Part shown: positions 29,963 through 57,193 of the stretch, in pieces
Position numbering within the stretch: the first letter of the stretch is position 1
Layout: each line of letters starts with the position of its first letter
Assembly (NCBI GenBank): GCA_977017575.1
Contig: CDRNVI010000164.1
Coordinates: 430,399 to 494,398, forward strand
Reading direction: 5' to 3'
DNA length: 64,000 bases
Source: Paramoeba atlantica
Lineage: Eukaryota > Protista > Discosea
The notes under the pieces: model-generated
Seen by the model: only the letters and a program-made list of their open reading frames with translations
Told to the model about the DNA's origin: nothing
Database searches by the model: none
Translations under genes and position numbers: made by a program

Positions 29963-30611
29963 CTAACCAATTGCCCGTTTGATTGTGGTGAAATTAACTC
30001 CAAAATTACCAAACTGTGAAATCTTTTCATCACACCAATGACCCTCAAAATGCTTTTCAAATATTTTACCACAAACTCGACAGGAAATTCCAAAATGAAC
30101 TCCATCACAAAAAGTATCACAATCATTTTGATGGGACAGAGAAAAATTCCCTCTGGCACTAGTTTCCAAACAATCATGACCACCATGATAACCAAAAGAT
30201 CTTCGACAAACAAGACAATTTCTTCCTTTGTGTGACTTTTCACAACGTGCATCACACACCTCATCTACATCAAATCAAAATTAACACAAGATATTGGAAA
30301 GAGAGGGCAAGGAATCCCAAAAAGAAAACCTTTGGGAGTGAGTGGCTCATTCCCTTTCTCGTAATCCCACATCAATGTCGAATTCCCCTCATTTACTCCG
30401 CGTGCTTTGTGGTTCTGCAAATGTTGAATGAATCTCTGTTGAATGAGAATGAATGAAAGAAGGGAGGAAATACCTGTGGGAACTCTTTGGGAGGCGCCAA
30501 AGATCCAGGTCGAAGAGAAACAGGTCGATCAAGATTTTCCTCGATCACTTCCTCTGGACCCACTTTTTCTTGGTGTTTTCGAAAAGAATTCCTTCGGAGA
30601 GCATTTCCCAT
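29963..30611 (-). CDS. Cys/His tandem-repeat family protein, copy 2
   Basis: Near-identical to copy 1, same exon structure, intact frame. Confidence 0.8.
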
Positions 30612-30794
30612 TATCTTCTCCAACAGAGAATAAATTTTTTAAAAAAGAGTCTCAGTTCTTTCACCAACCAACCGAAAAAAATTGGTGTGTTTTTGAGCCA
30701 ACCCAAATTTGGTTACCAATAATTATTTTGCTCTTTCGCTTGAAACGGTTGCACCGAAAGCAAAATTATTTTTTGGGAGGTTGGTTGGGTGAGA

Positions 30795-31448
30795 ATGGGA
30801 AATGTTCTCCGAAGATACTCTTTTCAGGAGCATCAAGAAAACTCAGAGGTGGTGATCGAGGAAAATCTTGATCTTTCTCCTGGACCTGACCACAATCCCA
30901 AAAATCTCAAAGAGTTCCCAAAGGTATTTCCTTCCTTCTTTCATTCATCTTCAAAAAAAACAAGGCCACCAGAGATTCAACTTTCGAAAACAGAACCACA
31001 AAGGATATGGAGTCAATCGAAAGAACAGCATAATAATGTGGGACTACGAAAAAGGGAATGATCCTCTCGCTCCCAAAGGTTTTCATTCTTTTGAACTTCC
31101 CTCTCTTTTTCGATTCACACTATCTTAGATGAGGTGTGTGATGCACGTTGTACAAAGTATCATAAAGGAAGAAATTGTCTTGTTTGTCGAAAATCTTTTG
31201 GTTATCACAGTGGTTCGCAGGTCCATGATTGCCCAGAGCCGGAGCACAACGCCAGAGCAAATTTTTCTTTAGCCCATCAAACCAATTGTGATACCTTTTG
31301 TGATGGAGTTCATTTTGGAATTTCATGTCGAGTTTGTGGTAAAAAATTTAAAGACCATTTTAGGGGACATTGGTGTGACGAAAAGCTTTCACAGTATGGT
31401 CATTTTGGAACTAATTATTTCACAACAATCAAACGGGCAGTTCGTTAG
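30795..31448 (+). CDS. Cys/His tandem-repeat family protein, copy 3
   Basis: MGNVLRRYSF...EFPK | NHKGYGVNRKNSIIMWDYEKGNDPLAPK | DEVCDARC...IKRAVR*; head-to-head with copy 2. Confidence 0.8.
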
Positions 31449-31526
31449 GATATTCATTGTAAAAAGAGTCTTTCACTAATTCATAATAAAATGTTGTGTG
31501 ATGATTCTTTTCTTTTTGGGGGATCC

Positions 31527-31604
31527 GATTTTCCTCAATCACTTCCTCTGAGACCACTTTTGGTGTGTTTTCGAAAACAAATCCTTCAAAGACCTTTTTC
31601 CCAT
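31527..31604 (-). pseudogene. Frameshifted, truncated exon-1 remnant of the Cys/His repeat family
   Basis: Homologous to copy 1 exon 1 (gattttcctc.atcacttcctctgagac...ttcccatt.tcttctccaacag) but reads MGKRSLKDLFSKTHQKWSQRK*. Confidence 0.75.
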
Positions 31605-31724
31605 TCTCTTCTCCAACAGACAGAGAAAATTTGGCTGTCTGTTTTGCGCCAGAAGCCAAATTTGGTGAATCAATAATTTTTTTTTGGGGGGGGGTTGGTT
31701 GGTTGGTTGGTTGGTTGGGCGAGA

Positions 31725-32401
31725 ATGGGAAATGTTCTCCGAAGAAAGTCTCTTCAGAAACATCAAGAAAACTCAGAGGAGGAGATCGAGGAAAATCTTG
31801 ATCGACCTGTTTTTCTTGGTCCTGACCACATTCCCGAGTTCCCCCAGGTATTTCCTTCTTTTTCTTCATCTTCATTCAAAAAAAAACAAAGGCCACCAGA
31901 CATTCAATTTTCGAAAACAGAACCACAAAGGATCTGGAGTAAATAAGAAGAATTCGACATTGATGTGGGACTACGAGAAAGGGAATAAACCACTCGCTCC
32001 CAAAGGTTTTTTTTCGTTCATTCCTTTGAACAGGTCATCCTCTCTCTTTTTCGATTCACACTATCGTAGATAAGGTGTGCGATGCACGTTGTCAAAAGTA
32101 TCATAAAGGAAGAAATTGTCTTGTTTGTCGAAAATCTTTTGGTTATCATAGCGGTAATTCTTTCCATAGTTGCCCGGTGCCAGGGCACAAGACCAGAGGG
32201 GATTTTTCTTTAGCCCATCAAACCAATTGTGATACTTTTTGTGATGGAGTTCATTTTGGAATTTCTTGTCGAGTTTGTGGTAAAATATTTGAAGACCATT
32301 TTGAGGGACATTGGTGTGATGAAAAGCTTTCACAGTATGGTATTTTTGGAACTAATTTTGGAACTAATCATTTCATAACAATCAAACGGGCAGTTCGTTA
32401 G
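31725..32401 (+). CDS. Cys/His tandem-repeat family protein, copy 4
   Basis: MGNVLRRKSL...EFPQ | NHKGSGVNKKNSTLMWDYEKG... | DKVCDARC...IKRAVR*. Confidence 0.8.
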
Positions 32402-54076: not shown

Positions 54077-54331
54077 TTCTCCCCCAAAAAAACAAACAAA
54101 AAAAACTAGTGTTGGGCAGATTAGTCGGCAAACCGCGGTTAACCGGTTAACCGTTTCCAATTGTTTGGTCGACTAACCGAACGGTTAACCGATAACAAAA
54201 GTTTTCACGTTGTTGAAAATCTGTCGTAGAATAAATCAACACGTCAAAAAAAAACGTTCGGTTAAAAAAATTTAAGCGAATGGTTTTTGTTTTCAACTCA
54301 ATAAAGAAAAACATTTTCGTTTTTCCCGCTC

Positions 54332-55168
54332 ATGGACGTCTCAACTCGACGAGCCTCATTGGAACTCCAACACTCTCAACAATCCGCACAACTCGAAAAA
54401 GAAATCCAACAATCTCCTCCTGTGGTCATCGTTTCCGTTGTCCGGTCTCTTGAAGCTCTTCGAGGCCTTGTATACCAACAGAAAAAAAGGAAACTTCGAA
54501 TCCATTATCCTTTCAAATCATTTGACGCTCTTGGAGTCAAGCCTGGGGACGCTGGAACGAAAGAAGAGCTTTTTTATGAGGATTTGTACGATACGCCTAA
54601 ATTCGATTTGTTACCGACGCACTGGCTTTGGAAAAGAGACGATGAATGGATTTTGAAAATTGACAAAGATTCAGAACCTGGAACGTCAGTTTTTGAAGAA
54701 AAGCGAGGAAAAGACGCTATCCAAGCGATTCGGATAAGACTTGGTGATGATTGGCAAGAAAAAGTGGAGACACTTGTAACTCTTAAAACAACGCGCTTTT
54801 ACGTGAGCAACTCTCATTGGGTAGATTTCACATCTTGGGCTCGATGGAAGATTGGTTATTACGCAGTCCAAACTTTTGCAGTCGATTCTGGCGAAGCCGA
54901 TATTCCCATTCGTTCTGATTTTTTTCCAATCCCAAGCAAAGGAATGGCTTGTTTATTTCATATTCTCCCGACGAATTTTAAGTCATTTTTCTGTTCGAGA
55001 CTCAAAATCCCCGAAAAAGAAGAGGAAGAATTTATGACTTTTGTTAAAAAGTCAAGCATTTTCGTTCACGAAGAACCTCTATATGGGCCTCAGATTGGGT
55101 TTCATAGTTCTGAGGAAAGTGGTGATGAAAGTTTTGAGGAAAGTGATGAAAGTTGTGAGGAAGATTGA
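54332..55168 (+). CDS. CYTH / thiamine-triphosphatase-like protein, probably catalytically altered, inside the hAT element
   Basis: FYEDLYDTPKFDLLPTHWLWKRDDEWILK aligns by eye to the recalled THTPA segment [31 protein letters not shown]; downstream TSVFEE, LVTLKTTR, WVDF and GYYAV are in THTPA order. Intronless; acidic tail. Confidence 0.65.
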   Translation: MDVSTRRASLELQHSQQSAQLEKEIQQSPPVVIVSVVRSLEALRGLVYQQKKRKLRIHYPFKSFDALGVKPGDAGTKEELFYEDLYDTPKFDLLPTHWLWKRDDEWILKIDKDSEPGTSVFEEKRGKDAIQAIRIRLGDDWQEKVETLVTLKTTRFYVSNSHWVDFTSWARWKIGYYAVQTFAVDSGEADIPIRSDFFPIPSKGMACLFHILPTNFKSFFCSRLKIPEKEEEEFMTFVKKSSIFVHEEPLYGPQIGFHSSEESGDESFEESDESCEED

Positions 55169-55185
55169 ATTTCAGAAAAAAAAAT

Positions 55186-55978
55186 TTATTTGGGTAGTAC
55201 AACTTGTTGTTGTTCATATCTGACAATTTTAAATACCCCATTACGATAAGAGTTTCGCTTCTTGAATTGATCTTCATCATGTCCATCATAGCACGGAAAT
55301 CCGTGTGTATAAGGACCTGGTTTATTCACATTGAAGCCATGACTCGCGACCACTGTGTTGTATCTCGTTTTTTCGATGTCTGAATTATATTTGAGACACA
55401 CGTGACAAACAAATCTTTGTGGTTTTGTTTCATCCGATTGACGATAAAAGAAAATCCGAACCCATTTTTCCACCAAGTTTCACAACAACAAGTCCTTGTC
55501 CCAAATCATATTTCCGAATCCCAGTTTTGGCTGCTTTTTGGAGTTGTTTTTGTAGTTTGGAGCCAATTGTTGTAAAGTCACTTTTGTCCATTTGGAAAAC
55601 AGCGTGACCAGTCTTCTCATCACCAATTACAATGGAAGATGAGGAAGGAGCAGGAATTGGAGGAGAGACAACAGCAGAGGAAGAAGAGGAGGCTATTGAA
55701 GAAGGGGATGGTGGAGCAGACGAACAGATCGAGGCAGAGGAAGATCCATCAGACAAAGAGATAGAGGAAGATGCAACAGTAGAAGAGGACGGTGGAGCAG
55801 ACAAAGTGACTGACGAAGAGGAAGACGTAGCAGAAGAAGAGGACGGTGGAGCAGACGAAGAGACTGACGAAGAGGAAGATGGAACAGTAGAAGAGGACGA
55901 CGGAGGAGATGGAGCAGACAACTCAGACATTTCAGGTTTTGGTTTTGGTTTGGGTATTGCTCGCGATAAAAACCACAT
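55186..55978 (-). pseudogene. Possible frameshifted 5' remnant of a hAT transposase (Ser-rich IDR plus BED-finger-like segment)
   Basis: 182-aa Ser/Pro-rich ORF overlaps, in another frame, KWVRIFFYRQSDETKPQRFVCHVC...H...H..C; starts about 130 bp inside the right TIR; no DDE core is present. Confidence 0.4.
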
Positions 55979-56431
55979 ATTTCTTTATTTGGTAATTTCT
56001 GTCGGTTAACTATCGGTTAACCGTTTGAGAGTTTCTTGTCGGTTAGCTATCGGTTAACCGGTTAACCGCGATATTAGTCGACCAAACAACGGTTAACCGT
56101 TAGCCAACACTAAAAAAAACAAACAAAAAAAGAGACCGTTTTTTTTTCATTTGAATTTTTGAATTTTTTGGGGGTGTTTTTTTTCTTTTTTCTTTCTTTT
56201 TTTGGTCGAAAAGGCAAAGATTGAGTTTTCGGCTTTTTGGCGAAGCGTTGTTTGAGATGAGTTTTGGCTGATGAAACGCAAGGAAATCAGGGATCAGAAC
56301 TCCCCTCAAATCTTTTTGAAGACCCAAAAAAGTGGGTTCGATGTAAATGAAATGAAATGATTCAAATTTGTTTTCTTCCTTTTTTTGTCTCAGTTTCACT
56401 TACGAAAAATTTCCATGAGTTTTTGTGACAT

Positions 56432-56568
56432 GGAGCTGTAGTTCAATGGTAGAGCACCTCGCCAGCTTGGAACTTAATTGGTTCAAGCACTGCTTAAAAC
56501 AACAATGTGAAAATATTGGTTTAAACCGGTAATGTGAGGGGATACAGGTTCGAATCCTGTCAGTTCCA
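56432..56568 (+). tRNA. tRNA-like gene copy 1 with ~65-nt structured insertion in the anticodon loop (identity unresolved)
   Basis: Acceptor GGAGCTG/CAGTTCC-A, D-arm GTTC-AATGGTA-GAGC, T-arm ACAGG-TTCGAAT-CCTGT, anticodon stem CCTCGC/GTGAGG, oligo-T terminator. Confidence 0.7.
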
Positions 56569-56640
56569 ATCTTTTTTTTCTCCCATCTAAGACCCATCTC
56601 AGATCCACAACGACAGAAAGAAGATTGGTTTTTATCACTT

Positions 56641-56772
56641 GGAGCTGTAGCCCAATGGTAGAGCACCTCGCCAGCTTGGAATTTTCCAAGCAATGCTTGA
56701 ATTACATTATGAAAATATATGGATTTAAACATGTAACGTGGGGGAATACAGGTTCGAATCCTGTCAGTTCCA
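56641..56772 (+). tRNA. tRNA-like gene copy 2 with ~60-nt structured insertion
   Basis: Same cloverleaf frame, A-box and B-box, T-run terminator. Confidence 0.7.
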
Positions 56773-56849
56773 ATCTTTTTTTTCTTCCTCCATCATCCAA
56801 GACGCCCTCAGTTACACAATGACAGAATGATGTATGGTTTTTGTGAATT

Positions 56850-56981
56850 GGAGCTGTAGCCCAACGGTAGAGCACCTCGCCAGCTTGGATTTATCCAAGC
56901 AATGCTTGAATTACATTATGAAAATATATGGATTTAAACATGTAACGTGGGGGGATACAGGTTCGAATCCTGTCAGTTCCA
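56850..56981 (+). tRNA. tRNA-like gene copy 3 with ~60-nt structured insertion
   Basis: As copy 2. Confidence 0.7.
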
Positions 56982-57061
56982 TTCTTTTTTTTTTCTTCCT
57001 CCATCATCCAAGACTCACCACAGATTCACAATGACAAAATGAAGAATGGTTTTTATCACTT

Positions 57062-57193
57062 GGAGCTGTAGCCCAACGGTAGAGCACCTCGCCAGCTTGG
57101 ATTTATCCAAGCAATGCTTGAATTACGTTATGCAAATATACGGATTTAAACATGTAACGTGGGGGGATACAGGTTCGAATCCTGTCAGTTCCA
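57062..57193 (+). tRNA. tRNA-like gene copy 4 with ~60-nt structured insertion
   Basis: As copy 3, with paired substitutions in the insertion hairpin. Confidence 0.7.

Follow-up and report, generated by a model that had tools for sequence, protein, structure and literature searches.

A probable non-autonomous hAT-like element with a two-gene filler, present once in an assembly of Paramoeba atlantica

What is a DNA segment that has the ends of a cut-and-paste transposon and, between them, genes in place of a transposase? The question is raised by positions 54107-56112 of a 64-kb stretch of Paramoeba atlantica DNA, called here the window (C164:430399-494398 in a 248-contig, 45.7-Mb assembly). 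An earlier note on this stretch had described the segment as a hAT element of the gene-carrying Pack type, with ends so perfect that recent mobility was suggested. Following our analyses, the best explanation, to which we give a probability of about 0.62, is a single, orphan, non-autonomous hAT-like element, similar in design to Ds2, whose filler consists of two genes. The parts of the element are as follows, with positions counted from the first letter of the window.

54099-54106, no strand: left target-site duplication AAAAAAAC, identical to 56113-56120
54107-54115, plus strand: left terminal inverted repeat TAGTGTTGG, which fits YARNG; its tip 8-mer is that of metagenome contigs L062, L123 and L143
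54116-54270, plus strand: left subterminal region (end A), with CGGTTAACCG at 54136, 54144 and 54182 and degenerate TAACCG/CGGTTA half-sites at 54174 and 54259
54332-55168, plus strand: cargo gene 1, intact, 278 amino acids, predicted CYTH/triphosphate-tunnel fold, single copy; best Foldseek match 5a65_A (E 1.4e-7)
55186-55978, minus strand: cargo gene 2, convergent, frame broken; Ser-rich N-terminus followed by a domain of a tiny unnamed family
56000-56103, minus strand: right subterminal region (end B), with CGGTTAACCG at 56014, 56051, 56059 and 56090 and degenerate copies at 56003 and 56040
56104-56112, minus strand: right terminal inverted repeat, CCAACACTA on the plus strand
56113-56120, no strand: right target-site duplication AAAAAAAC, matching the left copy

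End structure and its relatives in metagenomes

The tips are perfect inverted repeats over 9 of 9 bases, with a mismatch at the tenth, and the direct repeat abuts both of them; no repeat length but 8 works. The short terminal inverted repeats of hAT elements start with YARNG, and both tips of this element read TAGTG, in agreement with that rule. The 8-bp length of the duplication also fits a hAT element, though weakly if taken alone in A-rich flanks, and compared with the target pattern nTnnnnAn the duplicated sequence has the A at position 7 and lacks the T at position 2.

The subterminal DNA is built around the palindrome CGGTTAACCG, which is composed of two inverted TAACCG half-sites. All seven copies found in the window, against 0.01 expected, are no farther than about 110 nt from a tip, and together with degenerate half-sites they form arrays within about 160 nt of the tips that are asymmetric, as in hAT elements: the first motif is 30 nt from the tip at the left end and 14 nt from it at the right, and we refer to these arrangements as end A and end B. 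The words AACCG and CGGTT occur nine times in the left 170 nt, ten times in the right 120 nt and not once in the 1,716-nt interior. Two inverted repeats join the subterminal regions, one of 20 nt that is perfect and one of 47 nt at 77%. The mobile parts of the element are the 9-bp tips with roughly 100-160 bp of subterminal DNA per end, dense in CGGTTAACCG, and its 1.7-kb interior is filler without a transposase. Judging by how frequent the pattern is, we put at about 1e-5 the chance that each of the two arrays has a TAGKGWTG tip in the right orientation no farther than 45 nt away.

When JGI metagenome contigs were scanned for exact matches to a pair of CGGTTAACCG copies no more than 30 nt apart, at least 120 contigs were returned, where our rough expectation by chance was about 14. 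Among the matches listed, to which all counts in this and the next paragraph refer, 77 of 120 carried a tip of the form TAG[GT]GNT[GT] outside the motif and at most 45 nt from it, with none in the backward control. Contigs with such a tip made up 76 of the 110 below a GC content of 0.52 and 1 of the 10 that are GC-rich. The commonest tips were TAGGGATG (41), TAGGGTTG (30), TAGTGATG (5) and TAGTGTTG (5), the last of these being the tip of the window element. By their domains, which include a FAM69-type kinase, a PHD finger, EGF-like domains and a reticulon, the host contigs are eukaryotic and look animal-like.

Ten complete elements of 382-1315 bp could be delimited, and all ten are flanked by exact 8-bp duplications (TTGCACAT, GGCAAAAC, CTAATGAT, ACTGTGAT, GTAGGTGA, CTATTTTT, CTCCAGAC, GGCGTGAC, GTGTGTAG and GTACGTCT). 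Position 2 is T in seven of these and position 7 is A in seven, which fits nTnnnnAn. The spacing between tip and first GGTTAACCG has a bimodal distribution, with 29 ends at 13 nt and 42 ends at 32-33 nt, and each complete element combines one end of either class, as the window element combines its 14-nt right end with its 30-nt left end. The run GCAAACCG-(C)GGTTAACCG is common to the left end in the window and to end A of L062, L123 and L143. Profile hidden Markov models of the external ends matched, within the window, only the two ends of this element (E 4e-8 to 1e-5); we give these matches little weight because they are driven by the motif that was used to select the contigs. In a literature search, nothing but primers matched the strings of tip and motif.

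By its sequence, then, this end type bears the structural marks of hAT elements, namely a YARNG tip, 8-bp duplications biased toward T at position 2 and A at position 7, and subterminal repeats that are dense and asymmetric, and as judged from tip and motif matches the combination of a TAG tip with CGGTTAACCG is widespread in other eukaryotes. The earlier note had taken the TAG-starting tips, the exact 8-bp duplication and the dense subterminal palindromes as a hAT-type signature, and that part of it is borne out, the same end design recurring in the metagenome elements.

The metagenome contigs were also inspected for an enzyme and for relatives of the filler. No transposase domain was present in sixty open frames located within or next to the metagenome elements, and the listed contigs contained neither a homologue of the cargo genes nor any similarity to the interior of the window element. 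In contig L097, the region 297-1821 includes an open reading frame (ORF) for a P-element/THAP9-like transposase with helix-turn-helix, RNase H N-terminal and GTP-binding insertion domains, and this ORF ends where an element with the tip TAGAGTTGTTAAGACC and arrays of CGGTTAACCG starts. Probably one transposon has inserted into another here. This transposase was considered as the enzyme of the family and rejected, the ORF lying outside the element, which abuts it at ~1699.

The two genes of the filler

The filler holds two convergent genes whose stop codons are 17 bp apart. None of its three ORFs matched a Pfam family, whether of transposases or of other proteins, at E up to 1, and the frame of the second gene is split; the earlier description of an interior without a transposase, holding one full-length unrelated ORF and a convergent remnant, is thus confirmed. 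The GC content at third codon positions is 0.31-0.34 in both genes, similar to that of eleven neighbouring ORFs, so that their codon usage is host-like.

For the ORF at 54332-55168 (ORF1), five homologues with 41-61% identity were found among 5.8 billion proteins. They align along its entire length and share conserved blocks, which indicates that ORF1 is full length. One of the homologues, P0002, is on a 3.5-kb contig and another, P0005, on a 160-kb contig; scans of metagenome, viral and prokaryote-genome contigs found no relatives. Sequence searches of the PDB and of the ESM Atlas gave no match, and the fold search alone was informative. An AlphaFold model of the protein (pLDDT 72.6) had as its top Foldseek matches the mouse and human thiamine triphosphatases (E 1e-7 to 1e-6), followed by other CYTH proteins. 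According to this predicted model, the product has the eight-stranded CYTH/triphosphate-tunnel fold and is nearest to thiamine triphosphatase.

CYTH proteins, or triphosphate tunnel metalloenzymes, carry an N-terminal ExExK that serves as the metal and phosphate motif. ORF1 has neither this motif nor a Pfam CYTH match: its first core strand, the normal ExExK site, has the sequence R-I-H-Y-P-F, and glutamate is absent from that strand in every homologue. Because this strand is without glutamate in the homologues as well, it is possible that the protein is not a metal-dependent triphosphatase. The CYTH-like gene is probably functional as a normal host gene.

The second gene (ORF2) runs on the minus strand from 55978 to 55186, starts with a Ser-rich repeat and is then split over two frames. 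The switch is located between 55430 and 55482, a span that contains five consecutive A. A small number of relatives were found for the C-terminal piece, among them P0009 (208 amino acids), and both pieces of ORF2 match successive parts of P0009, at 39% and 38% identity, with ~40 residues of P0009 lacking a counterpart at the break. An intron was considered as the source of the break and is excluded because the parts homologous to P0009 abut within ~15 nt of it. Cargo gene 2 is therefore broken, unless the frame shift is an assembly error. A word search with piece A of ORF2 gave no match, no Pfam family matches the ORF2 family, and the model of P0009 was unusable for assigning a fold (pLDDT 39).

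Two observations concern the strand opposite this gene and its repeat. An acidic, Glu/Asp-rich frame of 125 amino acids is open on the plus strand at 55632-56009, opposite the Ser-rich N-terminus of ORF2. The Ser-rich repeat itself consists of three diverged copies of ~103 nt (55658-55895), and its coding strand is assigned solely by continuity with the conserved domain.

Copies, candidate transposases and competing explanations

The assembly contains 35 matches to PF05699, the hAT dimerisation domain, and in the loci that were read, two complete autonomous hAT elements could be delimited around such matches. One (L030, 7516-9913, on C48) has a 685-residue frame matching PF05699, the tips CAGGGTTCGCAG and the 8-bp duplication TCCAAAAG; the other (L033, 6447-9248, on C37) has a 638-residue frame matching PF05699, the tips CAGGGGTCCGAA and the 8-bp duplication TTTTGTAC. 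Since these true hAT elements carry both a YAGGG tip and an 8-bp duplication, the two features are validated locally as a hAT signature. Both elements have CAGGG tips and subterminal repeats of the type ACTATA, with no TAACCG. They are not plausible partners for the element at 54107-56112, and the search for an autonomous partner, which the earlier note had proposed, led to these unrelated tips and repeats.

Nearly all hAT matches are on contigs C2-C87, and the simple repeats of the window match only C137-C198. At C87:347507 and C157:52752, PF05699 scores are identical and each locus has one TAG stop, a pair that cuts across this split. Two organisms may be present in the assembly, and the link between the element and the resident hAT transposases would then be weaker still. 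As a separate observation, a repeat at C51:93374-93420, C60:80703-80749 and C60:88173-88219 starts with TAGTGTTGGG, the ten bases of the left tip, and continues with the palindrome TTAACGCGTTAA; possibly this is a terminus belonging to a different transposon family.

Several results weigh against a hAT-like element. A search of the assembly with the DNA of the whole element returned the element itself and two low-complexity matches only. Tip plus motif, double motif, motif pairs no more than 60 nt apart and a looser combination of tip and half-motif were found, assembly-wide, only at these two ends, and the generic design TAGKGWTG-N(3-33)-GGTTAACC occurs once per strand in the 45.7 Mb, both times at this element, with none in the backward control. 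No empty or allelic site was found in the same assembly, where a 10-kb query around the element matched only simple repeats. No cognate transposase, of whatever superfamily, with the same ends was found in the element, in the two delimited resident hAT elements or in the at least 120 metagenome contigs. The flanks are A-rich runs in which random 8-mers taken from 20-30 nt on each side match in about 3-7% of pairings, and for this reason the duplication of the element is by itself weak evidence. P elements likewise make 8-bp duplications. Finally, the metagenome contigs were chosen by the motif, which makes the similarity of their arrays partly circular; their tips, spacing and duplication length are independent of that choice.

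Because no transposase, in cis or in trans, could be tied to the end type, membership of the hAT superfamily has to be judged from the structure of the ends. Because the element is the only copy in the assembly and no matching enzyme was found there, it is probably stranded and not recently mobile. The earlier note had taken the perfect ends to suggest recent mobility, which is not supported: the element is unique in 45.7 Mb, no empty site was found in the assembly, and a perfect inverted repeat of 9 bp is too short to date anything. The search of the genome for ends with their arrays, also proposed there, gave matches nowhere but at the two ends in question.

By DNA search, the assembly contains no second copy of either cargo gene, and ORF1 and the C-terminal part of ORF2, when used as protein queries, each matched nothing but itself, the completeness of the assembly not being established. 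Non-transposon sequence lies between transposon ends here, as in Pack-TIRs (gene-carrying transposons with terminal inverted repeats), and the parental copy elsewhere in the assembly is lacking. Capture within this genome is not shown, because neither cargo gene has a second copy. Of the earlier Pack-type description, the part that holds is therefore the presence of non-transposon genes between hAT-type ends, and the part that is not supported is capture.

Among the other explanations, the one that survives best is a non-autonomous element of another superfamily that duplicates 8 bp, for example P, and we consider it unlikely. It would be in keeping with the lack of a hAT transposase linked to the ends, with the 8-bp duplications that P elements also make, and with the P/THAP9-like transposase ORF that adjoins one such element in L097. 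However, that ORF is outside the element, which abuts it (~1699), and, as with Hermes, the duplications prefer T at position 2 and A at position 7. The tips, moreover, fit YARNG and resemble that of Ac, TAGGGATG (PMC3260210).

Somewhat less probable still is that there is no transposon at all, and that a native pair of convergent genes has promoters with inverted palindromic arrays of transcription-factor sites, the identity of the flanks being due to chance. The Myb-type core is CNGTTR, which CGGTTA fits, and the arrays are 130-230 bp upstream of each start codon. A single copy with no empty site in the assembly, the host-like codon usage and the 3-7% local chance of a flank match would all be consistent with such a pair. 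Nevertheless, the tip 8-mer, the motif, the two classes of spacing and the 8-bp duplication also mark many short non-coding elements in unrelated animal-like contigs, and a motif that is found nowhere else in 45.7 Mb would be odd for a transcription-factor site.

The least probable reading, in which a Pack-type hAT took up two host genes in this genome, has been active recently and can still move, could draw on the intact tips and duplication, on the intact cargo gene with its host-like codon usage and on the many hAT transposase genes in the assembly, but it is opposed by the lack in the assembly of a parental copy for either gene, whether searched as DNA or as protein, and of a second copy of the element or of the end design, by the CAGGG tips and ACTATA repeats, without TAACCG, of the two delimited resident hATs, and by the location of nearly all hAT matches on the other contig set (C2-C87), maybe from another organism.

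The preferred explanation, a stranded hAT-like element, would imply a mechanism that can be outlined on the model of Ac and Hermes. The TAACCG half-sites would be bound in pairs, one pair per palindrome, by the N-terminal BED-type domain of a hAT transposase acting in trans, and this enzyme would then pair the two unlike ends and cut at the tips. Integration across 8 bp would yield the AAAAAAAC duplication. The element would now be stranded and currently immobile. Its filler could have originated through capture by gap repair in an ancestor, the parental locus being lost later, or it could have arrived together with the element from another genome.

Two other features of the window can be mentioned here. 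Four tandem tRNA-like genes (56432-57193) begin 320 bp to the right of the element. At 30067-32282, inside a five-gene array, a 9-nt inverted pair TACCACAAA has identical 8-bp flanks AAATATTT, which is probably chance or a by-product of tandem repeats.

Known systems and what the element means

Non-autonomous hATs with unrelated filler are already classical, Ds2 being an example (PMC3260210). Ds2 and Ds-like elements have in common with the autonomous element nothing but the short tips and the subterminal repeats, which cover about 200 bp; unrelated filler, sometimes gene-derived, takes the place of the interior, and their duplications are of 8 bp; the Ac tip is TAGGGATGAAA, and transposase-binding AAACGG hexamers are found in the terminal 200 bp of Ac (PMC3260210). 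Like maize Ds2, the window element is non-autonomous, with unrelated filler and an 8-bp duplication, and the tips are similar (TAGGGATGAAA in Ac, TAGTGTTGG here, TAGGGATG in the external relatives). Unlike Ds2, it has no Ac-like partner or sister copy in the assembly, and its filler consists of two entire genes, of which one is intact and the sole genomic copy. Its repeat also differs from that of Ac/Ds, being a 10-bp palindrome and not an AAACGG hexamer.

Hermes has BED domains that bind a quasi-palindromic subterminal pair, unlike ends, and the target pattern nTnnnnAn (PMC10368747). The window element resembles it in the 8-bp duplication and in having subterminal repeats near the tips that are arranged differently at each end. 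The motifs of Hermes are of the AAGT type, whereas the motif here is TAACCG, to which BED binding is extended by analogy.

Pack-TIRs, Pack-hAT among them, have been described in plants (10.1101/2021.06.18.448592), and a survey of 100 animal genomes, in which they were found via the parental copy, reported mostly single-copy fragments (PMC8277862). The window element is comparable in that non-transposon coding sequence is enclosed by transposon ends that form terminal inverted repeats, and most animal Pack-TIRs are single copy too. It differs from the published cases, which have a parental copy and usually carry gene fragments, in that its cargo has no parental copy in the assembly and includes a complete conserved gene. 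In amoebae, a hAT element is known from Entamoeba invadens (Chapka; PMC2657916), and our limited literature search found no report of a gene-carrying hAT or Pack-type element in protists.

A further likeness is to the small elements with tips TAGGGATG, TAGGGTTG or TAGTGTTG in contigs L039-L158, which have in common with the window element the tip 8-mer, the arrays of CGGTTAACCG, the spacing of 13 versus about 32 nt and the 8-bp duplications. Unlike it, they are 0.4-1.3 kb long, non-coding, present in many copies and situated in animal-like DNA. We can therefore speculate, while considering it improbable, that the element came by horizontal transfer from the carriers of the small TAGGGATG/CGGTTAACCG elements (animal-like DNA, host-associated metagenomes), or shares a recent transposase lineage with them, and brought or relocated a complete, working CYTH-like gene. 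If it were true, the sole genomic copy of a conserved gene would be transposon-borne, and a eukaryotic cut-and-paste element would have been a gene vehicle.

The importance of the finding is modest, because it concerns one immobile copy without a transposase. Its points of interest are an intact, sole-copy conserved gene between transposon ends, intact whole-gene cargo being rare among eukaryotic cut-and-paste transposons, and an end type that is shared across distant hosts. That shared end type offers a concrete starting point from which to look for the cognate transposase and to test whether there was transfer between lineages.

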